Positions 3,174-45,730 are shown, numbered from the stretch's first letter. The stretch: DNA of 64,000 nt from Macrostomum lignano (GCA_002269645.1 NIVC01000234.1:1-64000); one strand, 5' to 3'. Notes: generated from the letters alone by a model not told the origin. Numbers and translations: made by a program.

Positions 3174-6100
3174 TCAGGACTCTTCTTCAATGTCCGAGTC
3201 GTCATCGTTTCTCCTGCACTTCTGCACCAGAATATAGATGAACTCAAGCAGCTCAAATGTGCTCACGACGCTGATGCCGAGCCAGAGTCCCAGAGTTCCT
3301 CCAATCTGCGGGATATGGAGAAAGCATGCAGTACTCGAATTTTGAGCAGATGTCAAATCAGCTGCTGCCCTGTTGCTAGGGAAGAAACTGGGCAGAAGCT
3401 CAGTGCGGCCAAAGGAACCGTAGCGGGATGCCAGTGCGGCCAAAGGAACCGTAGCGGGATGCCAGTGCGGCCAAAGGAACCGTAGCGGGATGTCAGTGCG
3501 GCCAAAGGAACCGTAGCGGGATGCCAGTGCGGCCAAAGGAACCGTAGCGGGATGCCAGTGCGGCCAAAGGAACCGTAGCGGGATGTCAGTGCGGCCAAAG
3601 GAACCGTAGCGGGATGCCAGTGCGGCCAAAGGAACCGTAGCGGGATGTCAGTGCGGCCAAAGGAACCGTAGCGGGATGTCAGTGCGGCCAAAGGAACCGT
3701 AGCGGGATGCCAGTGCGGCCAAAGGAACCGTAGCGGGATGCCAGTGCGGCCAAAGGAACCGTAGGAACCGTAGCGGGATGTCAGTGCGGCCAAAGGAACC
3801 GTAGCGGGATGTCAGTGCGGCCAAAGGAACCGTAGCGGGATGTCAGTGCGGCCAAAAGAACCGTAGCGGGATGTCAGTGCGGCCAAAGGAACCGTAGCGG
3901 GATGTCAGTGCGGCCAAAGGAACCGTAGCGGGATGCCAGTGCGGCCAAAGGAACCGTAGCGGGATGTCAGTGCGGCCAAAGGAACCTTAGCGGGATGCCA
4001 GTGCGGCCAAAGGAACCTTAGCGGGATGCCAGTGCGGCCAAAGGAACCGTAGCGGGATGCCAGTGCGGCCAAAGGAACCGTAGGAACCGTAGCGGGATGT
4101 CAGTGCGGCCAAAGGAACCGTAGCGGGATGTCAGTGCGGCCAAAGGAACCGTAGCGGGATGTCAGTGCGGCCAAAGGAACCGTAGCGGGATGTCAGTGCG
4201 GCCAAAGGAACCGTAGCGGGATGTCAGTGCGGCCAAAGGAACCGTAGCGGGATGTCAGTGCGGGATGTCTGAAATGCGGGAATATTGCAACCGGAAAGCA
4301 GCTCTTACCTCCGACAGGGCCTCGGTCCAGTGGTACTTGTACATCTCTTCGTAAGCATCCGCCGCAGGACTCTGCAAGCTGATACGGACTGCTGCCAGCT
4401 CTTTGGCCAGTTCGCTGCGAGGAATACAAGACGCTGCAGATTCAACGATTTTTCTTCTATAGTCTTCAAGCGAGCTTAGGTCAGTAACATTAAATTTTCC
4501 TAAAACATTGAAATTGCAACCTTCGTACCCTCGAGCTAGCATATACAGCTGAATTTCCTGCCTGGTTTCGGTGCTGTTCCGAAAAATGTGATGCACTTTG
4601 CCATCCTCGGGCAGGAACTCGACTCCATGTCTGACTTGCGGCACCATCAGGTTCTCCCAGATCTCTTGAATGGCGCTGAACGGGGGCCAACTGCGGCTCT
4701 GCTGCCAAGGCCGTTGCTGGGTGAAGTGGCACCACATCCGGTGCTGGAACTGCTTCGCTAGCTCTTGGCTTTTCCTCTGTGCGTGCTGAAACCAGTGATC
4801 ATGGCAGTCAATTCTCTTCAGCACAGCATCCGATGGGGTGATCCACTCCTGCGGTGGAGCGAAGTAGCACAGGTCGCTCGTATTCACCGAGAACGGGAGC
4901 AGGTGTGAATAGCAGCCGCAGTTGCTGTGCAGGATGCTCTGCTGTGCCTCGACTACGAAATCGGAGATGGACTTTGAGTAGGCCTTGGTGACCACGTTCA
5001 GCGAGGCGTTGGAGAAGTGCCTGACATAGTTGATGGTTTCGATAGGAGGCTCGGAGCATCTGCGGCTCGGCTTCGACATGAGTCGGTTGTGGATCGGCCT
5101 GAGTTTGATGGAGGTGCTGCTGGCTGAGGCCACGTCCACGAACTCGGTCTCTGCGGTTTGGCATGGGCTGTGAGACTTTTTTAGCATGCGTTGTGAGACT
5201 GTTTTAACATGGGTTGTAAGACTTTTTTAGCATGGGCTGTGAGACTTTCGTGGAATGAAGCACTTTCAACTAAAAGATAAAAACTTATTAAAAGTTTATC
5301 TAAATATAAGAAAAAAGATCATTGACACTAAATTAAGCAACTAATTTATTAAGTTTTGGGCTACTTTTTGCTGCAAAAATCAAATTCGCGGGTAGCGAAG
5401 CAAAATTACGCACGGCTCATCGGGAAGCTTTTCTCCTCGTGAATGAAAATGCGCAATCCAGCGGACTGCAGCTCGTCGCTCTGCAGCAGTCGGTTGATGG
5501 CTTTGCTGCGTGAGAACTTGCGAAACATGCAGCCGTCGCGCAGTGCTTCATTTCGCCAATTTCCATGCCAGTCGGGAAACTTATCGTTGCCATCGGTGAA
5601 GAGCACCATGTCCAGCTCGGCTCCCCTGCCCCCAGGACCGCTGGACGACTGCCGTGGGTCCGGGTGGAACGTGTAGCAGTTCCAGAACCGGCTGGTCTGG
5701 ACAAGCGAGAAGTTTCTGTGACTGCACGGCTCGCTGTTGTAGCGGCAGCTCAGCAGCATGGTCTCGTCGAGCTGGGAGATGTCTCTGGTGTCGCCCGACA
5801 CCCACATCACGTCCAGGACCTTTTTGCACACCTTCTCAAGTCGGCTATCATAGCTTTCACCCGATTCTTGCGGGCGCCTCTGGGTGTCCTCCTTGAACCA
5901 GTTGACGAAGTTGCCCCAGAAGTTTTCAAAGTAGTCAAACACCTCAAACTTAAACCTAAACTTAAAGTGGGATTCATAGAAATCTTTTAAAGACAGCAAA
6001 GATGCAGAAGCGGGCTTCAAGTTGCAGATTGTGATGTCGGGAAACTGAGCTCGTTCGCTCCTCAGCTTCAGCTGAGACTCAACGGAGCGCTCGGTGAACT

Positions 6101-6278
6101 TCTGCACCAACTTGGCCAGGTGGACGGTGCAGCCGATCAGGGCAGCTACGAACAGAAGCAACCAGAAGAGCCGTCTAGCTGTGCTTCTGGACAGAAAGAT
6201 GTGCAGCAAGCCGTGGGTTCTCGTGATGCCAGCCAGCTCCTGGGCGGCACCGGTCACCGTGCGGAGTCGAGTTCGCAT
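3174..6278 (-). CDS. DEG/ENaC family sodium channel, FaNaC-like; exons 6278-5414, 5150-4309, 3305-3174; about 612 aa
   Basis: N-terminal HG motif (TRTHG), TM1 (RRLFWLLLFVAALIGCTVHL), FPDITICN, C-x-Y-N-x-x-x-C and GLRIFIHE, CGC thumb, and TM2 ALSE|IGGTLGLWLGISVVSTFELLE with the GxS filter. GT-AG introns (5151-5413 phase 1, 3306-4308 phase 0) join all three ORF pieces in frame. Confidence 0.93.
3401..4268. repeat. Intronic minisatellite, 31-bp unit CAGTGCGGCCAAAGGAACCGTAGCGGGATG(C/T)
   Basis: About 28 near-identical copies filling intron 2 of the channel gene. Confidence 0.95.
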
Positions 6279-9189
6279 TTTCCTCTTCAGCTAATTGTAA
6301 CTTAAGCTTGTAGATTTCTCAAAGCAGTTGCTAACGAGTTATTTGCTTAGTGCCCAGAGAATATCGAGCGCTCAAGCCAAGAACTCTTTCGCCCGGCAGT
6401 CCTGTTGCAGCAGTGCGAGCTGCGTCCGATCGCTGCCCTAGACTAAATCCCTACCGCGACTTTCGTACTTTGCTACATTGGCAAGCTCAGAACGCAGCTG
6501 ATTGATAGACAATTTATTCATATTGGAAGAGAATTTGAAATTTGCTAAACTATGCATACCATGAAGACCTTTCTCGAATTGGTGTGATATCACTCTGGCA
6601 TGATCCATTAGTGTGATGTCACTCTGGAAATGTTTATAAATGTTATGCCAGTCTGGAATTATTACGAGTCACTCCAATTTTCTCCCAGTGCCTAGTGTGA
6701 GGTCATTCCAATATTCTCCCCATTTGAGTAATCTGTGAATTAGGCCTGGCAGAGGCCATGCACAATCTTCTTCATAACCAAAGCAGGTACATTACCGATC
6801 TCAGCCTGTACTCGTATGACGTGGAAGCAGCGGGAGGCCTGCTTGATCATATGACCCACTCAAATGAAATCCTGCTGTCCGAATTGGAACTCTCCGCTCC
6901 ATATTTAAAATCTAGCATTTCACCACGCCACAAAAATAAAGCAAATGGAAACTGCATGGCAACCACACGTGAAATCCTTCTGACAGCACATCGGCACTAA
7001 TTGATGTACCATTTGAAATTGTCCAGAATAAATTTCTCGTCAATCGCGCCACAGCTACAGCTTTACGTCATAAATTAAAATCAGCAAGTCTGGGGGAATT
7101 GAATCACCCTCCACCTAGACAGTCAAATAAGCGGCGATTCACGTCCTTCAGTGCACCCAACCTTTCGCCGGCCACACCGCGGTGACACCATCCGCTTTCA
7201 ACCGGTGCAGGACATCTTGCTGCTTACATTTACGATGCAGGACCCGTTTTGTGAACAGTACTCTCTGTTCCCTGCATGGTGGTGTGCCTTGTCGATTGTA
7301 CTTTCATGTAGGCTGGCTCGAATGTCTGCCACTGGTCCCCCGCTGAAGATTTAATGAGTAAAATTGCAGTTTGTAGTCTGCAGTTCTACATGAACATGCA
7401 AAATGCATTCTAGCCAATGCTAATTATAGAAGATAGAAACATTCCCCATAGTTTCCCCATTTCTCAATAATTTTCATAGCACAAAACTGTAAAACTTTAT
7501 ATCTACAGTATGCCTGAAGCCTTAACAACATTCTCAACGCCGTTTTCACCACTCGGGGACTAACAATAGGGTGGCATCTACATGTATAAAACGCTCGAAA
7601 GCACAGGGAGAGGTGGGGCTAACGCACTCAATTTCTGGCAATTCCCGTGCGGCTGCATCCTATATTGTTCCTCAATTCCATTGCACCTTCCGCGCAGTGC
7701 CCGAGCAGCTAACTTATGCAACTGCAGGCAATCCGCAGCAATAAAGGCCATTCATGCATTCTCCCTGTTGGACGCGGAGCACAATTCTTCATCATCTGTG
7801 AATGCCCCGCCCACTCTATGCTTGTCAGCTACCTTAAAGGAGAAGGACAGGACTGCGCTGCGAACACCCGGTACCACTGGGATGCATTTACATGTAACGT
7901 TTACGGTTACGAGCACCACTTAGCTTCCCGAATGACCAAAGCCCTGATCTGCAGCTAAATCAAGTAATTGTCAGTTAAATAAAAAACAGAAAATTTTACG
8001 CGCCTGCAATCCTCGGACCTTGGGCCATGTTTTGCGCAGTACAGAATTTTTTAAAAGTATGCAATTTTCAAATACCGTCACTTTTTTAGTGTATAACAAA
8101 ACCCTTTGTATTGTGAGGCCCATAAATACAATATTTTGATGAAGACAGCCTAAGAACTTACAACATGCTATACCTGTTATCACTCTAAAAATCATGAATT
8201 GTCTATTTTTCGCGCCAATTTTTAATTCTAACTACACTCGCCGAATGAGCACGTACTTGGTAACATGACTTTCAAGTAGTAGGCCAATCGCGTGACCGCC
8301 CTATCGGAAAACATCTCTTGGCTCTATTTATGCCAGGTTCTGTCCTCTCTGCTCGCGCTCATAATTTAGGTCTAAGCTATCATTAACTAGAGTAGCCACT
8401 TCACTTTCCAACACCAGCTCTTCACCATTTGGATATCATATCACTTATCACTTTTGCTTCATATTATTATGTAAGGCCTAATAGATAATAGCATAGCCCA
8501 AGCAACCAGATTTACCAAGACTTTTTACACTTGTAGTCTAGCAGATCAGATTAGAGTGTCAACAGCTGGTACTAGTAAATTTACACCTGTTAACATTAAC
8601 AACTGTTTGCTTCAAATTGTCATTGGTTTCTTGATAAAGTATCAGGCCAATGATGAGCTTGAATAGTAGCCTAGCTTGGCCTACTGAAATATATTAACTA
8701 TTTTAATTGCAGATGGATTGAAATTGATTGACAGGTATTTCCAATTTAAGAGTTTAAAAAAATCTTTAATGGATAGATTTTAAGTTTGCAAAAATAGATA
8801 CAAGATAAGATCATAAGTGGGACTTTGGCTGGTTATTGTTGACCCTTATTGGTCAAAGAAAAAATCTTACTAAACAAGAAGTGCACAAGTGGGTTCTTAA
8901 ACAGCATTAAAGTATTTTATTTTTAGCAGATATAAAAGAGTACTGGATGTTTTAAGTTAGTTTACATTGATAGGCTAATGATATTGTAAGGTTATTAGAG
9001 ATTTATTTATATAGACAGTTCTTTAAAATCTTGACCTCGTTCAAAGATGAAAATTTAATTTCCCTTGAATTTTCTAAAATAAAAATGTCCAGGAGAGTAG
9101 CTAGAACAGAAACAAATACACTAAGAACAGTCTAATACTTGCACTAGACTTGCAATATACAAAGTTAAAATATAGGGTAAGGGTAGGCT

Positions 9190-11050
9190 CTAACCCATTT
9201 GTAGTTTGTAAGTTAAAATCAATTTCACGAGTGCAGTAAACACCGCGAGTAACTATGAGTGCAATTCAAACACAAATTGCCTCGCCACCTAATTGGTATT
9301 GTTTTTATTAGTAATATACAAGCATCCTTTTCATAAAAAGGTAATAATAAATAATGTTTAAGCAGATGCAAACTGAATGGTTTAAGGGGTGATAAAAATT
9401 TCTTAGGCATAAACACATTGATAATTTAATAGACTTACAAATGGGACAAAAAATTTTTTGAAAATCTTAGGGCCTATACAATCTTGAAAATATTGATGTC
9501 TTTGAAAAATCTTTAGTAATAAGTTGGTTTGGTCAATAGATACTTTATATTAATATTTTTTGAGAACAGTGATTGAAATTTATCAGTTTAAATAATCTTC
9601 TAAGGGATATTAGAATAACTACTAGGGGGTAAAATTCACAGATTATCAATCACATGGTTGCGGTAAACAGCCCGAGTAACTATGAGTGCAATTTAACAAT
9701 AAATTGCCTCGCCACATAATTTGTACTTTTTTAAAATCAATACATGAGCATCAGTTTTACTTTTAGATAAAAGTACTGGTGAATAATATGTAAGCAGAGC
9801 TAAACTGACTGGTTTGAGAGGTGATATAAAGTTTCTAAACACATTAACAATGATAGACCTTAATATTTTTCCCAAATCCTTAACCATCCTTTAAATTAGG
9901 CCTATATTAGGCCTATCTTTGAAAAATCTTTAGTTAATAAGTTAGGTGGTCAATTAATACTTTATTTTAATATTTTTTCGAGTGAAATTGATCAATATGA
10001 ATAATGACTCTTTTAACAATTTTTTATGAATTATTTAGCTATTTTTGCAATGCTATGATAATAATGTAACAAGCTATTTTATAGCAATATTGTTTTCAAT
10101 TATTTACTATTTAATTTTGTTAAAATCAGTTTAAAGTCACTTTGGATAACATAATTACTTCATTCTAAGGGCATTAAAAAGGTTAGTGATAATGATAGAA
10201 TGATGATCAGGGTAAAATTTGCTTATTATCAAGCATATAGCTGTGGTAAACAGCCCGAGTAACTATGAGTACAAGTGAACAGTAAATTGCCTTGCCACCT
10301 AATTGGTACGATTTTTCTAAGTAGTATACAAGTATCATTTTTTATTAAAATATTTTAATGTCAATGAATGATTTTAAGCAGAGACAAACTGAATGGTTTC
10401 AGAGTTGAAAAAACATTTCCTTAACACATTGTCTAAGATTTAGGAAAAATAGTCTGTCATTTTCAATCTTTTAAATGGTGTTATGCTTAAACAATATTTC
10501 ATTTATAAGTCTGTAGGCCAATATGTACTTATTTAAATGTTATTTTGAGTATAAATGATTTTCAACTGATTTCTATAAACTATATGCACTTTTGAATAAT
10601 ATTTTGTGAATATTATTGTTATTTTTATAATCCCATCCCATTAAAACAATATTGTTAAAAGACAAAAGTTATTTAACAATGTTGTTTATAATTAATTATT
10701 TACCATTCATTTTTTATTCAGATTAGTTTTAAGTCATTTTATATAGCCTATCTACTTTATTCCAAGAGCATTGGAAATAATAGTGATGAAAATATAAGAT
10801 AATTAGAGAGTAAAATTCTTAGATAATCAATCACGTGGTTGTGGTAAACAGCCCAAGTAACTATGAGTACAATTGGACAGTAAATTGCCTTGCCACCTAA
10901 TTGGTACTCTTTTTCTAGGTAGTATACAAGTATCATTTTTAGATAGAAGTGAATAATGTTGAGATAAGCAGAAATGAACCAGATAGTTCCAAGAGTGAAA
11001 GTTCCTAACACATTGAAAATAGCAGACTTGATAATTTTTTCCTAAATCCT
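9190..11050 (+). repeat. Four diverged tandem units (about 430-600 bp), each with a 63-nt core resembling 28S rRNA H69-H71
   Basis: Core GTAAACAGCCCGAGTAACTATGAG...TGCCTYGCCACCTAATTGGTA starts at about 9236, 9663, 10246 and 10844. Downstream AT-rich blocks (TAAGCAGA...AAACTGA.TGGTTT, AACACATT) are also shared between units. Confidence 0.85.
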
Positions 11051-11228
11051 CAACAATCTTTTATCTTTTTAAAGTGTGCTATCTTATTATTTAATATTTA
11101 ATATTTATTATTTATTTAATATTATTTATTATTATTTTGAGTATAAATTATTGTAAATTAATCTGATCTCAAATTGATATGTACTTTTGACTCAATATTT
11201 CGGAAATAATAGTTATTTTTGTAATTTT

Positions 11229-13928
11229 ATGATCACAGTACCATGGTAACAATGCCATGATAATGCCATGATAACAGTGCCATGATAACAGTGCCATGAT
11301 AATGCCATGATAATGCCATGATAACAGTGCCATGATAATGCCATGATAATGCCATGATAATGCCATGATAATGCCATGATAACAGTGCCATGATAATGCC
11401 ATGATAATGCCATGATAACAGTGCCATGATAATGCCATGATAATGCCATGATAATGCCATGATAACAGTGCCATGATAATGCCATGATAATGCCATGATA
11501 ACAGTGCCATGATAATGCCATGATAATGCCATGATAACAGTGCCATGATAATGCCATGATAATGCCATGATAACAGTGCCATGATAATGCCATGATAATG
11601 CCATGATAACAGTGCCATGATAATGCCATGATAACAGTGCCATGATAATGCCATGATAACAGTGCCATGATGATGCCATGATAACAGTGCCATGATAATG
11701 CCATGATAATGCCATGATAACAGTGCCATGATAATGCCATGATAACAGTGCCATGATAATGCCATGATAACAGTGCCATGATAATGCCATGATAACCGTG
11801 CCATGATAATGCCATGATAACAGTGCCATGATAATGCCATGATAACAGTGCCATGATAATGCCATGATAACAGTGCCATGATAATGCCATGATAACAGTG
11901 CCATGATAATGCCATGATAGCAGTGCCATGATAATGCCATGATAACAGTGCCATGATAATGCCATGATAATGCCATGATAACACTGCCATGATAACAGTG
12001 CCATGTTGACAATGCCATGATAACAGTGCCATGTTGACAATGCCATGATAACAGTGCCATGATAATGCCATGATAACAGTGCCATTTTGACAATGCCATG
12101 ATAACAGTGCATGTTGACAATGCCATGATAACAGTGCCATTTTGACAATGCCATGATAACAGTGCCATTTTGACAATGCCATGATAACAGTGCCATAAAA
12201 ATGCCATCATAACAGTGCCATGATAGCAGTGCCATGAAAATGCCCATGATAACAGCGCCATGTTGACAATGCCAGGATAACAGTGCCATGATAACAGTGC
12301 CATGATAACAGTGCCATGATAACAGTGCCATGATAATGCCATGATAACAGTGCCATGAAAATGCCATGATAACAGTGCCATGTTGACGGTGCAATGATAA
12401 TGCCATGATAACCGTGCCATGATAATGCCATGATAACCGTGCCATGATAATGCCATGATAACAGTGCCATGATAATGCCATGATAACAGTGCCATGATAA
12501 TGCCATGATAACAGTGCCATGATAATGCCATGATAACAGTGCCATGATAATGCCATGATAACAGTGCCATGATAATGCCATGATAACAGTGCCATGATAA
12601 TGCCATGATAACAGTGCCATGATAATGCCATGATAACAGTGCCATGATAATGCCATGATAGCAGTGCCATGATAATGCCATGATAACAGTGCCATGATAA
12701 TGCCATGATAATGCCATGATAACACTGCCATGATAACAGTGCCATGTTGACAATGCCATGATAACAGTGCCATGTTGACAATGCCATGATAACAGTGCCA
12801 TTATAATGCCATGATAACAGTGCCATTTTGACAATGCCATGATAACAGTGCATGTTGACAATGCCATGATAACAGTGCCATTTTGACAATGCCATGATAA
12901 CAGTGCCATTTTGACAATGCCATGATAACAGTGCCATAAAAATGCCATCATAACAGTGCCATGATAGCAGTGCCATGAAAATGCCCATGATAACAGCGCC
13001 ATGTTGACAATGCCAGGATAACAGTGCCATGATAACAGTGCCATGATAACAGTGCCATGATAACAGTGCCATGATAATGCCATGATAACAGTGCCATGAA
13101 AATGCCATGATAACAGTGCCATGTTGACGGTGCAATGATAATGCCATGATAACCGTGCCATGATAATGCCATGATAACCGTGCCATGATAATGCCATGAT
13201 AACAGTGCCATGATAATGCCATGATAACAGTGCCATGATAATGCCATGATAACAGTGCCATGATAATGCCATGATAACAGTGCCATGATAATGCCATGAT
13301 AACAGTGCCATGATAATGCCATGATAACAGTGCCATGATAATGCCATGATAACAGTGCCATGATAATGCCATGATAACAGTGCCATGATAACAGTGCCAT
13401 GTTGACAATGCCATGATAACAGTGCCATTTTGACAATGCCATGATAACAGTGCCATTTTGACAATGCCATGATAACAGTGCCATAAAAATGCCATCATAA
13501 CAGTGCCATGATAGCAGTGCCATGAAAATGCCCATGATAACAGCGCCATGTTGACAATGCCAGGATAACAGCGCCATGATAACAGTGCCATGATAACAGT
13601 GCCATGATAATGCCATGATAACAGTGCCATGAAAATGCCATGATAACAGTGCCATGATAACAGTGCCATGTTGACGGTGCAATGATAATGCCATGATAAC
13701 AGTGCCATGATAATGCCATGATAACAGTGCCATGATAATGCCATGATAACAGTGCCATGTTGACGGTGCAATGATAATGCCATGATAACCGTGCCATGAT
13801 AATGCCATGATAACCGTGCCATGATAATGCCATGATAACAGTGCCATGATAATGCCATGATAACAGTGCCATGATAATGCCATGATAACAGTGCCATGAT
13901 AATGCCATGATAACAGTGCCATGATAAC
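11229..13928. repeat. Satellite of interleaved 11-bp (GCCATGATAAT) and 14-bp (GCCATGATAACAGT) units with higher-order duplication
   Basis: Visible directly. The diagnostic variant CCATAAAAATGCCATCAT recurs at about 12193, 12934 and 13481. Confidence 0.95.
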
Positions 13929-38505: not shown

Positions 38506-38774
38506 CTCAATCGTTATAACAAACTTTTATTTGAAAGTATCTACTCTAGTACTGCTGATATTAAAATTATAATTAAAAAATGTTTTGTATAGTTGAATCA
38601 AAGTTGAGCACAGCTCGGGTTAATTGAGGGCTATCCTTCATCCTCGAACAGCACGCTCATTGACTGGGTCTTCGTGGTCATTGCGGTTGGCACTGGAGTT
38701 GCAAACGGGGATGAATATAATTAATTAAATAGGCCTTCAAAAAGTGATTGTGTGTGAGCATTAAAAATTGTGAT

Positions 38775-39118
38775 TCTTCCCACCCATTCTGACTCTTCCC
38801 ATCCCATCCAATCCTGGTTATTTCCACCCCACCCTGATTCTTCCCACCCATCCCGATTCTTCCCACCCATCCTGATTCTTCCCACCCCATCCTGATTCTT
38901 CCCACCCCATCCTGATTCTTCCCACCCCATCCTGATTCTTCCCACCCCATCCTGATTCTTCCCACCCCATCCTGATTCTTCCCACCCCATCCTGATTCTT
39001 CCCACCCCATCCTGATTCTTCCCACTCCATCCTGATTCTTCCCATCCCATCCCATCCTGATTTTTTCCTTCCCATCCCATCCGATTCCGATTCTTCCCAT
39101 CTCTTCCCGATTCTTCCC
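38775..39118. repeat. 20-bp minisatellite ATCCTGATTCTTCCCACCCC abutting the AMPD stop codon (3' UTR)
   Basis: Period 20 visible directly. Confidence 0.9.
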
Positions 39119-39121
39119 AAA

Positions 39122-40944
39122 CTAACAGCCACAGGACCCACCCGACAAGCCGCTGTGCCCGTTGTGAGCTCTCGACCTCGGATTAGCGGTGGTAACCAGG
39201 GCCAATTCGTGCAGCAGATTCTCGAAACGAAACGCCACTCGAACGTTAGGCAGATTAGTGTACCGAATATCGTTGCCAAGGACGCCTTCGTGTTGATAGG
39301 CCGGGCCGAGCCAACGCTTCTTCACTTCGTGAGGAAAGCCAGACATGATTACAGAGTTTCTGGCCAGCTCGCACATGTCTGTGTTGGTGAGCTTCCACAC
39401 CTGGGCCGCGATGGAGTACTCTTCCGTCAGCGGCTCCTTGGTGAAGTGGAACATCAGCGGATCGTCTGTGCTCAGCGTCACGCACAGGCCTTTGGCGTGA
39501 AAGTCTGGCAAGGGACTGCGGCTGTAGGGCAGGAACAGGCTGTTGTTGGAGAGCGGCGACATGGCCATGGGCACCTGGGCCAGGTAGTACAGGTACTGCA
39601 GCACCGGTGCCTGCGGGCGAGAGGGGGGCGAAAGTTGTAACGTGGGAGGCTGGCCCAGCAACTGGGGATCTGGGAGGCTGGTCCAGCAACTGAGGATCTG
39701 GGAGGCTGGTCCAGCAACTGAGGATCTGGGAGGTGGCTTACCAACTGAGGATCTGGGAGGCTGGCCCAGCAACTGAGGATCTGGGAGGCTGGCGGCCCAG
39801 CAACTGAGGATCTGGGAGGCTGGCCCACCAACTGAGGATCTGGGAGGCTGGTCCAGCAACTAAGGATCTGGGAGGCTGGCCAGCAACTAAGGATCTGGGA
39901 GGCTGGACCAGCAACTAAGGATCTGGGAGGCTGGTGGCCCACCAACTGAGGATCTGGGAGTCTGGTCCAGCAACTGAGGATCTGGGAGGCTGGCGGCCCA
40001 GCAACTGAGGATCTGGGAGGCTGGCGGCCCAGCAACTGAGGATCTGGGAGGCTGGTCCAGCAATTGAGGATCTGGGAGGTGGCTTACCAACTGAGGATCT
40101 GGGAGACTGGTAGCCCAGCAACTGAGGATCTGGGAGACTGGCCCAGCAGCTGAGGATCTGGGAGGCTGGCCCAGCAACTGAGGATCTGGGAGGCTGGCCC
40201 AGCAACTGAGGATCTGGGAGGCTGGCCCAGCAACTGAGGATCTGGGAGGCTGGCCCAGCAACTAAGGATCTGGGAGGCTGGCCCAGCAACTGAGGATCTG
40301 GGAGACTGGCCTAGCAACTGAGGATCTGAGAGGCTGGTAGCCCAGCAACTGAGGATCTGGGAGGCTGGCCCAGCAACTGAGGATCTGGGAGGCTGGCCCA
40401 GCAACTGAGGATCTGGGAGGCTGGCCCACCAACTGAGGATCTAAGAGGCTGGCCCAGCAACTGAGGATCTGGGAGGCTGGTGGCCCACCAACTGAGGATC
40501 TGGGAGGCTGGCCCAGCAACTAAGGATCTGGGAGGCTGGCACAGCAACTGAGGATCTGGGAGGCTGGTGGCCCAGCAACTGAGGATCTGGGAGGCTGGTG
40601 GCCCAGGAACTGAGGATCTGGGAGGCTACCAACAAAGGATTTGTATCAAAACTATCAATACACCTGGCCCAGCAACTGAGAAGCAACACAGCCAACCTTT
40701 CTGAGCAGCAGGCCGTGGCTAATATTGTCAGCCAGCAAGAAGGCGGTTGCCAGATGATGCACAGGTCCAGCCTCGCCACAGTGCGGCCTGAGAACGATCG
40801 GTTGCAGGCCTCGCTCCCGTCTCAGAGCGTTCAGCGGCACCAGGTTAGCGTACAGGTAGTACAGGTAGTAAGCGTACGGCGGGTTGCGCTGACTCTCCGT
40901 CCATTCGGCCGGTTCCGGGGAGTCGTGATCGAACACCACGGACT
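39122..40944 (-). CDS. AMPD: AMP deaminase, last two coding exons (40944-40697, 39610-39122); 5' exons not found in the window
   Basis: [33 protein letters not shown]|[49 protein letters not shown] and RVAFRFE; catalytic His/Glu/Asp residues intact. A phase-0 GT-AG intron spans 39611-40696. Confidence 0.95.
39640..40626. repeat. Intronic minisatellite, about 28-32-bp unit GGAGGCTGGCCCAGCAACTGAGGATCTG
   Basis: Fills the last AMPD intron. Same family as 35452-36020 in the opposite genomic orientation. Confidence 0.93.
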
Positions 40945-43094: not shown

Positions 43095-45730
43095 ACAGCG
43101 TGAACGCGGCGGAGATGGTGAGGCCCAGGGCCAGTGGAGGCCAGAGCTGCCAGCGATGCGGCCAGGCGCCACATCGCCGACCCGACAGACTGCCGGGCTC
43201 TGAAGGTTACGTGCCACAAGTGCGGCAAGACTGGCCACTTCGCGAAGGTCTGCCGGAGTGCCAGGACCCACTTTGTCACAGCCAACGAATCCAAGCACTC
43301 TGACTCAGCCGTGACCAGAGACGAGCCGGTTTTCTACTGCGGTGCGGGCACCCGTGCTGCATTCTGCGATGTGAAAATCAACAGAAGGCAGGTCAAAATG
43401 GAAAAGGACAGCGGAGCCTCGTGCTCACTGATCTCGAGAAAGATCTGGGAAGAACTCGGCAGGCCGCCCCTGAAGTCGCCCAAGTCTCGGATGCTGGCCT
43501 ACGACGGGCACGTAATGAAGCAGCTCGGCATCCTGGAGTGCCTGGTGGAGACTGGCGGCCCTGATGGCCGCTTCGCTGCGGCGGAGCTGCCCGTCATCGA
43601 ATGCGAGCAGAAGTTCGGGTTGCTCGGCCGGGATCTGCTCAGCTCGCTGCTGGGTGAGCACCCAAGTGTCATCGTGCACCAGGACGATGTACTCATGGGA
43701 GCGGTGTCGAAAGCGGAGCTGCAGAATATCAGAGAGAAGGTGCTGGACAAGCTGAGGACGGCTAATGGGAAAATCAACGAAGCGAAGTGCATTTTGGAGG
43801 CCAATTATCTTGAAGTTCCTGGGCCACATCATCGATGAAGAGGGGATCAAGCCGGACCCGGGAATGGTGCAGAAGATTCAGGATGTGGAGGCTCCGAAAA
43901 GCAAGAAGGATCTCGAGCGGTTTCTGGGACTTGCGCAGTTCTATGGTCGATTGGTTCCCAACTTTGCTGAGAAGTGTCGGCCTCTGCAGGAACTTCGTCG
44001 AGCGGACCGTGTGTTTGACTGGAGTGCGGCTGCCGAGGCGGCGTTCACCAATGTGAAGCAGAGCCTGAGCTCGAATCCGTGTGTGAAACCGTTTGACGTC
44101 AACTCGCCGGTGTGTCTGCGGGTGGATGCTAGCGAGCAGTCGCTGGGCGCTGTGCTGGTGCAGTCAGGACACCCAGTCATGTACCTCTCTCGGGCGCTGA
44201 CCAAGTCTGAGGCCAATTACTCCAACATTGAGAGGGAGGCACTGGCCATTATTTGGGCGGTGGAGCGAGCCCACAAGATGCTTCTGGGGAAAGAGGTTCA
44301 CGCTGCAGACTGACCACGAACCACTGAAGTACATCTTCAATCCCAGCAAGAATCTTCCTAAAACAGTGTCGGCAAGACTAACTCGCTGGGCACTGCGACT
44401 ATCTGCTTTTGACTACGAGGTGGAGTATGTGCCAGGAAGACTTATGGTGGATGCGGATGCCTTGTCTTCTTTGAGTTTTGCTGCCCAAGACCCTCCGAGT
44501 GACGCTGTGCACCAGCTGGAGCATGAAGAGGTCGTGTCAGAAGGAGCTCTGATGACTCTGCAGGATCTTCGTGACGGAACCAGGATGTGCGCGTTGATGA
44601 AGCGGCTGCAGCAGAGGATCCGAACGGGCCGGTGGGGCCAGGTGTCGCAGGTGGAGAGGCCGTACAAAGCGTGCCGGGAGGCGCTGTCGGTGGAAGATGG
44701 TCTGGTGATCCACGGAACCAGAATTGTGCCGCCACCTGATCTCCGCAGGCGCATCCTGGAGGTGGCGCACGACGAGGTGCATCCGAGCGTCGACAACACC
44801 AAGGCGCACATCTCCAAGGAGTTCTGGTGGCCGGGTCTCGATCGCGATGTTCGCAGCTTTGTGGAGCGCTGCCAGCAGTGCTCAGAAACTCGGCCAGTCC
44901 TGCAGCGGAGAATCGACACCTGGCCAGCAGAGAGTGAGCCGTGGTCCCCGGTTCACATGGACCATTGTGAGATATCTGGAGTCGGCCTGCTACTGCTGCT
45001 GTCGGACTCCTACTCGGGGTGGCCTGAGGCCATCCAGGTGCCAGACCGAACTGCGGACAGTGTCCTGTGGGTTCTGAGAGTGGTGTTCGCGAGGAACGGA
45101 GTGCCTCGGACGCTGATGTCGGACAATGCGCCGGAGTTCAAGTCAGAGAGAGTGTCCCAGTGGCTGCACAGCATCGGGTTCCAGGAGCTGCACACTCCAT
45201 CCGGTCTCGAACGGTCAGACAAAAAGGCTGGTGAGGATCATTAAGGATGGACTCAAGGCGTGGACAATAATGGTGCCGTTCGACCACTTTCTGCAGAAAC
45301 TGCTGCTGACGATCAGGACCAGCCGGCCCAGTGGAAATCGAGCGGCATCTCCGGACATTCTGATGTGGGGTCGTCGCCTAAACATGACTGAGCAGGTGGG
45401 CGATCCAATCTTGCTGAGGATGCGTCCGGGATGCTCGCCGGTTCCGGCCAAGTACGTGGTGCAGCAGGGCCGAACACGGCGCTGGTAGCCCCTGCGGACC
45501 AATCGGACGGCGGCCTGCGGCTGCATGGCGCACTCGAATCAGTGAACCGGCCGGATGAGTGCGCCTGGGTCGCTTTAGGGGGCCGAACCTGAGTCGGAGT
45601 TGCGGGAGCAGCTTCCTGACGCCAAGGTTGAGCAACTCTCTGATCCGGAACCAACGGCAGCGCCCCTGACCAGCGGCCGGAGGGAACCGTACGAGCTTCG
45701 GCCGCGCCAGCCGGTCTGCTATAAAGACTA
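43095..45730 (+). mobile_element. Decayed Ty3/Gypsy (Mag-like) LTR retrotransposon: gag knuckles, protease, partial RT, RNase H, integrase
   Basis: CQRCGQAPH and CHKCGKTGHFAKVC knuckles; protease DSGASCSLI...LLGRD; RT VHQDD and FLGHII; RNase H DASEQSLGAVL...YSNIEREALAI...TDH; integrase H-H-C-C, HMDH and SDNAPEF. Several frameshifts; 5' LTR not seen. Confidence 0.92.

Follow-up and report, generated by a model that had tools for sequence, protein, structure and literature searches.

The locus considered here raises the question of what a short stretch resembling 28S ribosomal RNA is doing, four times over, in intergenic DNA of the flatworm Macrostomum lignano. It lies in the window (the whole stretch of DNA that was analysed, 64,000 nucleotides, positions 1-64000 of contig NIVC01000234.1), in about 10 kb of intergenic DNA between divergent genes for an ASIC-type channel and a nuclear receptor. 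The ORF at 5406-6278 on the minus strand is an ASIC/ENaC-type channel exon whose nearest relatives are M. lignano proteins with 86-90% identity (an exact look-up of this ORF returned no record), and the four copies lie 3-4.8 kb upstream of its start (6278, minus strand). An earlier note, made from the sequence alone, had described four diverged AT-rich units that each keep a 63-nt core, and probe searches confirm this, placing the cores at 9235, 9662, 10245 and 10843. The units are arranged head to tail in tandem, with one 63-bp core in each, as follows.

9175-11229, plus strand: whole array (family D1), units of 427, 583, 598 and at least 447 bp, spacing 427/583/598
9235-9297, plus strand: core 1, 42/63 identical to 28S, the most diverged copy, without TAAAAT at -32
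9302-9306, plus strand: T5 run, 4 nt past core 1
9630-9635, plus strand: TAAAAT box, exactly 32 bp upstream of core 2
9662-9724, plus strand: core 2, 42/63 identical to 28S
9727-9732, plus strand: T6 run past core 2
10213-10218, plus strand: TAAAAT box, exactly 32 bp upstream of core 3
10245-10307, plus strand: core 3, 42/63 identical to 28S, within a segment of about 100 nt (10243-10342) that is 95% identical to unit 4
10312-10316, plus strand: T5 run past core 3
10811-10816, plus strand: TAAAAT box, exactly 32 bp upstream of core 4
10843-10905, plus strand: core 4, 43/63 identical to 28S, within the conserved segment 10841-10940
10910-10914, plus strand: T5 run past core 4
10373-10413, plus strand: second, weaker conserved block (family D2), TAAGCAGAG..AAACTGAATGGTTT.AGAG, about 65 nt past the core
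9357-9397 and 9789-9829, plus strand: further copies of the second block (family D2)
about 10966-11000, plus strand: degenerate copy of the second block (family D2)

Unit boundaries were placed 60 bp 5' of each core, and the 447 bp given for unit 4 is a lower bound, the 3' end of the array being the start of a ATGATAACAGTGCC minisatellite. In all four units the T run begins 2-4 nt past the core; its columns (T128-T132 of the alignment) are invariant in 4/4 units, while the 2-4 linker bases between core and run vary. The motif AACACATTG is found about 20 nt after the second conserved block. What is repeated is the full unit of 427-598 bp, core and spacers being homologous, and not the core alone. 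Since the spacers of neighbouring units are homologous, the array arose by local tandem duplication, and it consists of four units which each carry an indel-free conserved module.

The surroundings are extraordinarily minisatellite-rich nuclear DNA, with dozens of arrays of 13-94 bp period across window positions 1-64000, many of them 0.5-2.7 kb long and several creating long spurious ORFs. The 25-nt ATGATAACAGTGCC minisatellite (11229-13928) begins inside unit 4, at the place where units 2 and 3 read GCAATGCTATGATAATAATG and ATAATCCCATCCCATTAAAAC, and appears to have grown out of a seed sequence that the repeat unit already contained. Further along the window, a C-terminal exon of AMP deaminase (39122-39859, minus strand) is bordered directly by two minisatellites (38771-39052 and 39643-40627), and three tandem paralogous ORFs of 205-231 aa with a weak CCCH zinc-finger match occupy 49543-51741 and 52133-55138 on the minus strand, adjoining a 1001-aa ORF without a Pfam family. 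A degraded gypsy-type LTR retrotransposon (protease, RNase H and integrase in broken frames) and DNA polymerase fragments are found at 43134-45488 and 57966-59419; the fragments are of the type-B, organellar or viral kind and perhaps belong to a Maverick/Polinton-like element. The gypsy integrase, used as a query, retrieved only short metagenome contigs and no M. lignano loci.

The likeness of the core to 28S rRNA was assessed in several ways. Two probes allowing up to 3 mismatches, GGTAAACAGCCCGAGTAACTATGAGT for the left block and AAATTGCCTYGCCACCTAATTGGTA for the right block, match only at the four cores (9235/9662/10245/10843 and 9274/9701/10284/10882, respectively), where shuffled sequence is expected to give 0 matches. 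The ungapped identity of cores 1-4 to the 28S segment GGTAAACGGCGGGAGTAACTATGACTCTCTTAAGGTAGCCAAATGCCTCGTCATCTAATTAGT is 42, 42, 42 and 43 of 63; this segment was checked against the 84-bp rDNA target oligonucleotide given in the methods of bioRxiv 10.1101/2024.11.11.623112. Divided by part, the matches amount to 20-21/24 on the left, 3-5/15 in the centre and 18-19/24 on the right, and they are thus concentrated in the two blocks (40/48, compared with 4/15 for the centre; Fisher p 9e-5). For copy 3 the hand counts made earlier were reproduced (42/63 without gaps, 21/24 in the left block and 16/20 in the final 20 nt of the right block).

The probability of at least 42/63 matches is 8e-12 per position, and the expected number of such matches is about 1e-7 for a core defined beforehand by its conservation and set against a 7-kb rDNA unit, about 2e-4 when every 63-mer of the array is compared with rDNA, and about 1 when every 63-mer of the window is compared with a megabase of sequence that is well known. 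When the 84-nt 28S target was compared with the 64-kb window by blastn, the top four matches were the four cores, with E values of 1e-5 to 2e-4 under +1/-1 scoring and 0.004 under default scoring; rescaled to the whole rDNA unit the significance is borderline (E about 0.01). The Rfam model LSU_rRNA_eukarya gave no match, either at the gathering score over the whole window or at E<=10 over 9000-11250. The similarity to LSU rRNA on which the earlier note had staked its reading is therefore positive but weak by blastn and negative by Infernal, and the note had named the latter outcome, no significant covariance-model match, as one that would refute it. Because the BLAST support is weak, descent of the core from 28S is to be regarded as probable, roughly three in four, and not as proven; the signal is weak but unlikely to be due to chance.

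The resemblance is confined to the core, as had been claimed, since the flanks of the units score like shuffled sequence when compared with 28S upstream and downstream and no rRNA similarity was found beyond it. The blocks span about -35 to -12 and +5 to +28 relative to the nick made by the R2 retrotransposon, and between them lies a 15-bp spacer which is fixed in length and free in sequence. The cleavage-site sequence CTCTCTTAAGG|TAGC is absent from all four cores, the 15-nt centre matching 28S at the 3-5 positions noted above, so that unrelated sequence of equal length has indeed taken the place of the R2/I-PpoI centre. Inspection shows that the cores do not rebuild the H69 stem (GGGAG/CUCUC in 28S); the stem partners are absent and, as the earlier note had it, nothing compensates for them. 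An LSU rRNA gene or pseudogene is not supported as an identity: there is no covariance-model match, no extension into adjacent 28S and no sign of the H69-H71 helices. A nuclear copy of mitochondrial rrnL was rejected, the left-block GAGTAACTATGA being, by inspection, the cytosolic 28S form and not the mitochondrial or bacterial one.

The four copies are not equally conserved along their length. With gap columns counted, pairwise identity is 82-95% in the core, without indels, and 55-71% in the flanks, where about 20% of the columns are gaps, and the cores are therefore better conserved than the spacers, a comparison that had been suggested as a check. At non-gap positions units 3 and 4 are identical at 62/65 in the core and at about 75% in the flanks (Fisher p 8e-5), and the best 65-column window for this pair also scores 62/65, starting at 10242-10245, against a median of 35/65. 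Taking all four units, conservation goes up at about -2 and comes down past the T run; between units 3 and 4, 95% identity persists for about 100 nt, some 30 nt beyond the T5 and up to a second T run. The extra conservation of the two 28S-like blocks over the centre and the spacers is real.

Whether this pattern needs any function to explain it is the point on which a neutral origin has to be weighed. A short fragment of 28S rDNA, captured through repair or by a reverse transcriptase and with its centre replaced in one event, could later have been copied four times by local tandem duplication and be functionless, the apparent conservation resulting from short-tract gene conversion together with a core whose higher GC content would make slippage rarer there than in the AT-rich spacers. 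The 100-nt, 95% identical stretch shared by units 3 and 4 does resemble a single conversion tract. Conversion tracts are contiguous; in most pairs, however, the variation of the 15-bp centre exceeds that of the blocks on either side of it 2-4 times, and the columns invariant across the four units number 41/48 in the blocks as against 7/15 in the centre (p 0.004). Also against a neutral history are the position of the conservation peak, which is at one shared place in 6/6 unit pairs, and the count of 0 indels over 65 bp in four copies where the flanks have about 20% gap columns. In its favour are the results that no RNA structure, Rfam match or coding signal was detected and that no other copy of the core was found in the window, in a sample of about 150 kb or in metagenome contigs. 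The earlier suggestion of an amplified rDNA relic, read as a neutral one, is in our estimate as probable as the reading favoured below, and it is taken up again with the second copy of the locus.

A number of specific identities were tried and set aside. A coding exon was considered, as a minus-strand frame is open through the four cores (ORFs of 43-84 aa at 9225-9416, 9693-9887, 10207-10338 and 10757-11011), but the differences among the copies are mostly non-synonymous and no homologue was found; the predicted proteins of public assemblies hold no counterpart of the 84-aa ORF that spans core 4, and all plus-strand frames across the cores contain stops. The spliced leader of M. lignano is CGGTCTCTTACTGCGAAGACTCAATTTATTGCATG (PMC8629364). 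An SL RNA gene was sought by the criteria of a 35-nt SL followed by a GTAAG donor and of an Sm site between hairpins, and was rejected, CGGTCTCTTACTGCGAAGACTCAATTTATTGCATG being absent from the units and no three-hairpin fold being formed. On the minus strand a C/D or H/ACA snoRNA was dismissed, as there are no properly placed C/D boxes (by inspection) and no Rfam match. A scan of the window for tRNA and tmRNA genes gave nothing, no convincing terminal inverted repeats were found around the AT-rich block, and a search of the literature on M. lignano repeats or 28S-derived repeats found nothing relevant.

The position of the blocks invites comparison with the mobile elements that insert into 28S genes. 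The array is not an R2 target, an R2 insertion or a SIDE, in that the cleavage site is absent and the two halves are merely 15 bp apart; nor is there a reverse-transcriptase ORF near the array or, by Rfam, a ribozyme family. The independent insertions expected of a SINE are likewise not seen, there being homologous spacers, no A-rich or simple-repeat tail and no direct flanking repeats, and the SINE-like unit of the earlier note is not upheld, as the units have neither a tail nor a target-site duplication and no other copy was met with in about 150 kb or in the metagenome scan. It might still be argued that the core descends from a mobile element, which would be either a SINE made from 28S or a non-autonomous relation of some non-LTR retrotransposon that targets 28S and has a 28S-like UTR. 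28S-targeting non-LTR families are numerous in flatworms, and some R2 lineages carry diverged 28S-like sequence in the 3' UTR (PMC5035012). We consider this origin improbable: the homology of neighbouring spacers points to local duplication and not to insertion, no poly(A) or simple-repeat tail, target-site duplication, or reverse-transcriptase or ribozyme remnant is seen by inspection, and no further copy occurs in the window or in four other M. lignano loci (L001-L003 and L018), a sample of about 150 kb which is weak for this purpose.

That the blocks serve as a decoy for R2-type or other rDNA-targeting nucleases, the protein being bound by the flanking blocks and unable to cut, had been proposed, and it has a certain appeal in that the blocks flank the nick while the centre that would hold the nick is neither 28S-like nor conserved. 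This we judge very improbable. Each block differs from 28S at 3-6/24 positions, including the GC-rich run of the left block, and the nick-proximal bases read by the zinc fingers of A-clade R2 proteins are the very part missing here, these proteins making base-specific contacts close to the nick (bioRxiv 10.1101/2024.11.11.623112). Moreover, four copies set against hundreds of rDNA units would provide little titration, and no R2 element was found in the window. The wider proposal that the blocks are kept as mimics of 28S, whether as a sense rRNA-mimic RNA competing for factors of H69-H71 or as DNA which binds a retrotransposon protein and goes uncut, also seems improbable to us. The earlier note had, besides, offered a source of antisense-rRNA small RNAs as a candidate.

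The reading that we favour, at a probability of about three in ten, is that the units form a small family of Pol III-type genes for small RNAs, which would have developed from a piece of 28S that had been captured. In units 2-4 a TAAAAT box stands exactly 32 bp upstream of the core, so that transcription, were it to occur, would start at about the first conserved base, and the T5-T6 run 2-4 nt past the last conserved base would stop it. The RNA so made is predicted to be about 70 nt long, unstructured and in sense orientation, with the sequence of the H69 loop (GAGUAACUAUGA) and that of H71. Of the units, 3 and 4 look intact, and 1 and 2 may be decaying copies. Such an RNA could, to give one example, compete for factors which recognise that part of the 28S.

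Several features are consistent with Pol III-type genes: a conserved short unit is repeated in tandem with a variable spacer, the A/T box and T run are in the places where such genes would have them (these being weak, short motifs in AT-rich DNA), and for a core that is chosen in advance by its conservation, the match to 28S exceeds chance. The same local layout surrounds a tRNA gene, a true Pol III gene from this genome, in two paralogous ASIC loci, L002 and L003, where A/T boxes stand at roughly -25 and -35 and a T7 run follows 2 nt past the gene. This gene (L002 9427-9497 and L003 9451-9521, minus strand in both) precedes the paralogous ASIC genes by about 500 bp, is encoded on the strand opposite to theirs, and reads by inspection as tRNA-Gly with anticodon GCC; neither the window nor the collinear locus L001 described below has a counterpart of it.

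Other observations argue against Pol III-type genes. At about 31% GC, TAAAAT and T5 are cheap motifs; the identity of units 3 and 4 past the T5 is left unexplained by a terminator at the first run; and in L001 the box and the T run of unit 2 are altered, cores 1 and 2 there diverging at the background rate. No credible Rfam family, be it LSU, snoRNA, snRNA or other, was found on 9000-11250 at E<=10 or, at the gathering score, in the whole window, the matches listed having E>1 and being chance, and no shared RNA fold emerged from single copies on both strands or from folding the alignment over 78 and over 102 columns. On neither strand do the copies fold with lower energy than shuffled sequence (z from -2.0 to +1.9, with copy 3 at +1.6 to +1.9). 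Core 2 differs from L001 and from the other cores by C>A and G>T (window 9716 and 9722), changes which could pair in an ACC-UAAUU-GGU hairpin of 3 bp, with one compensatory-looking replacement of C-G by A-U; this is not significant, as 86/500 shuffles reach an equal result.

The same anatomy may be looked at as DNA. In that case the blocks would be clustered transcription-factor sites forming a cis-regulatory module, duplicated four times and situated upstream of the divergent ASIC-like and nuclear-receptor genes, and the 28S likeness would be exapted or coincidental. A constant distance between two blocks whose spacer is free to vary, the absence of RNA structure and a conservation that is not bounded by the T run would all suit such a module, as would the placing of the array within a divergent intergenic region, 3-4.8 kb upstream of the ASIC start. 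By inspection, the right block contains TAATTG, which is a homeodomain core, and ATTGG, which reads as a CCAAT box on the opposite strand, and the left block opens with GTAAACA, the canonical forkhead site. These motif words are short and may be chance matches, tandem enhancer arrays with a period of 0.4-0.6 kb are unusual, and a cis-regulatory module leaves the 28S likeness, the exact -32 position of TAAAAT and the T runs unexplained. We rate a cis-regulatory module as somewhat less probable than Pol III-type genes or a neutral relic.

A second copy of the locus, in the M. lignano contig NIVC01000105.1 (L001), allows the question of constraint to be approached from another side, with the reservation that this between-locus comparison involves two copies of one locus only. 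L001 is collinear with the window and likewise has the four cores. Across window positions 5100-11240, aligned with the reverse strand of L001, divergence is a mosaic, in which the ASIC exon is about 95% identical (90% as protein) and most of the intergenic DNA 98-100%, with a single divergent patch at 9200-10000 that covers units 1 and 2; the alignment also has about 455 gap columns near 6600-6800. Units 3 and 4 are identical in the two copies and are hence uninformative on constraint. Cores 1 and 2 have 5-6 substitutions in about 130 nt, or about 4.6% against a local background of about 5.6%, and in unit 2 of L001 the box reads TAAAGT in place of TAAAAT and the run TTTTGT in place of T6. Units 1 and 2 thus bear no sign of present constraint, although with counts this small a threefold lower rate would escape notice, and this divergence of the two cores at the local background rate speaks for a neutral relic.

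Beyond these two loci, searches with nhmmer found no further copy of the core elsewhere in the window or in L001-L003 or L018 (about 150 kb of M. lignano DNA), the paralogous ASIC loci L002, L003 and L018 being without it. Of two scans of JGI metagenome contigs, the first gave 0 matches and the second 14, and as the left block is absent from every one of the 14, these matches are chance.

Among known systems, the closest things are rDNA-derived fragments outside rDNA and tandem arrays of small-RNA genes. With the former, that is pseudogene pieces, orphons and tandem repeats, the array shares a stretch like 28S domain IV in non-rDNA surroundings and local amplification. It differs from them in that only the two 24-bp blocks are 28S-like, the 15-bp centre and everything outside being unrelated, that the blocks are better kept than their surroundings, and that the Rfam LSU model is blind to the array. 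Like 5S rDNA, tRNA clusters and SL-RNA repeats, it is a head-to-tail series in which a short conserved segment alternates with fast-evolving spacer, and as in small-RNA gene arrays there is an upstream A/T box at a fixed distance and a T run directly downstream. In contrast to these, it belongs to no known RNA family and has no conserved fold; it has, in addition, only four copies, two of them apparently decaying. SINE28 of mammals is dispersed and derived from another part of the 28S; it is likewise a non-coding repeat with an rRNA-derived part, whereas the present array is made of local tandem duplicates with homologous spacers. Diverged 28S-like sequence from near the R2 site, retained outside a functional 28S gene, is also known in the 3' UTRs of R2 elements (Kojima, Seto and Fujiwara 2016; PMC5035012) and in R2 SIDEs (PMC3414825). 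Compared with these, the array lacks an R2 body and any remnant of a ribozyme or reverse transcriptase, has not been inserted into rDNA, and has both sides of the R2 site present and adjacent.

The array is real and mildly unusual, and is a modest curiosity. As a neutral relic it would be of little consequence, adding another rDNA-derived scrap to a genome that is already very rich in repeats. If the blocks are kept as mimics of 28S, the host would have made one of its loci out of part of its own rDNA. Should the blocks really be under constraint, they would represent a non-coding element recruited from a fragment of 28S rDNA, one that retains exactly those parts on either side of the most heavily targeted site in animal rDNA, and the array could point to a new small RNA or to an interaction with mobile elements specific to rDNA in a tractable flatworm model.
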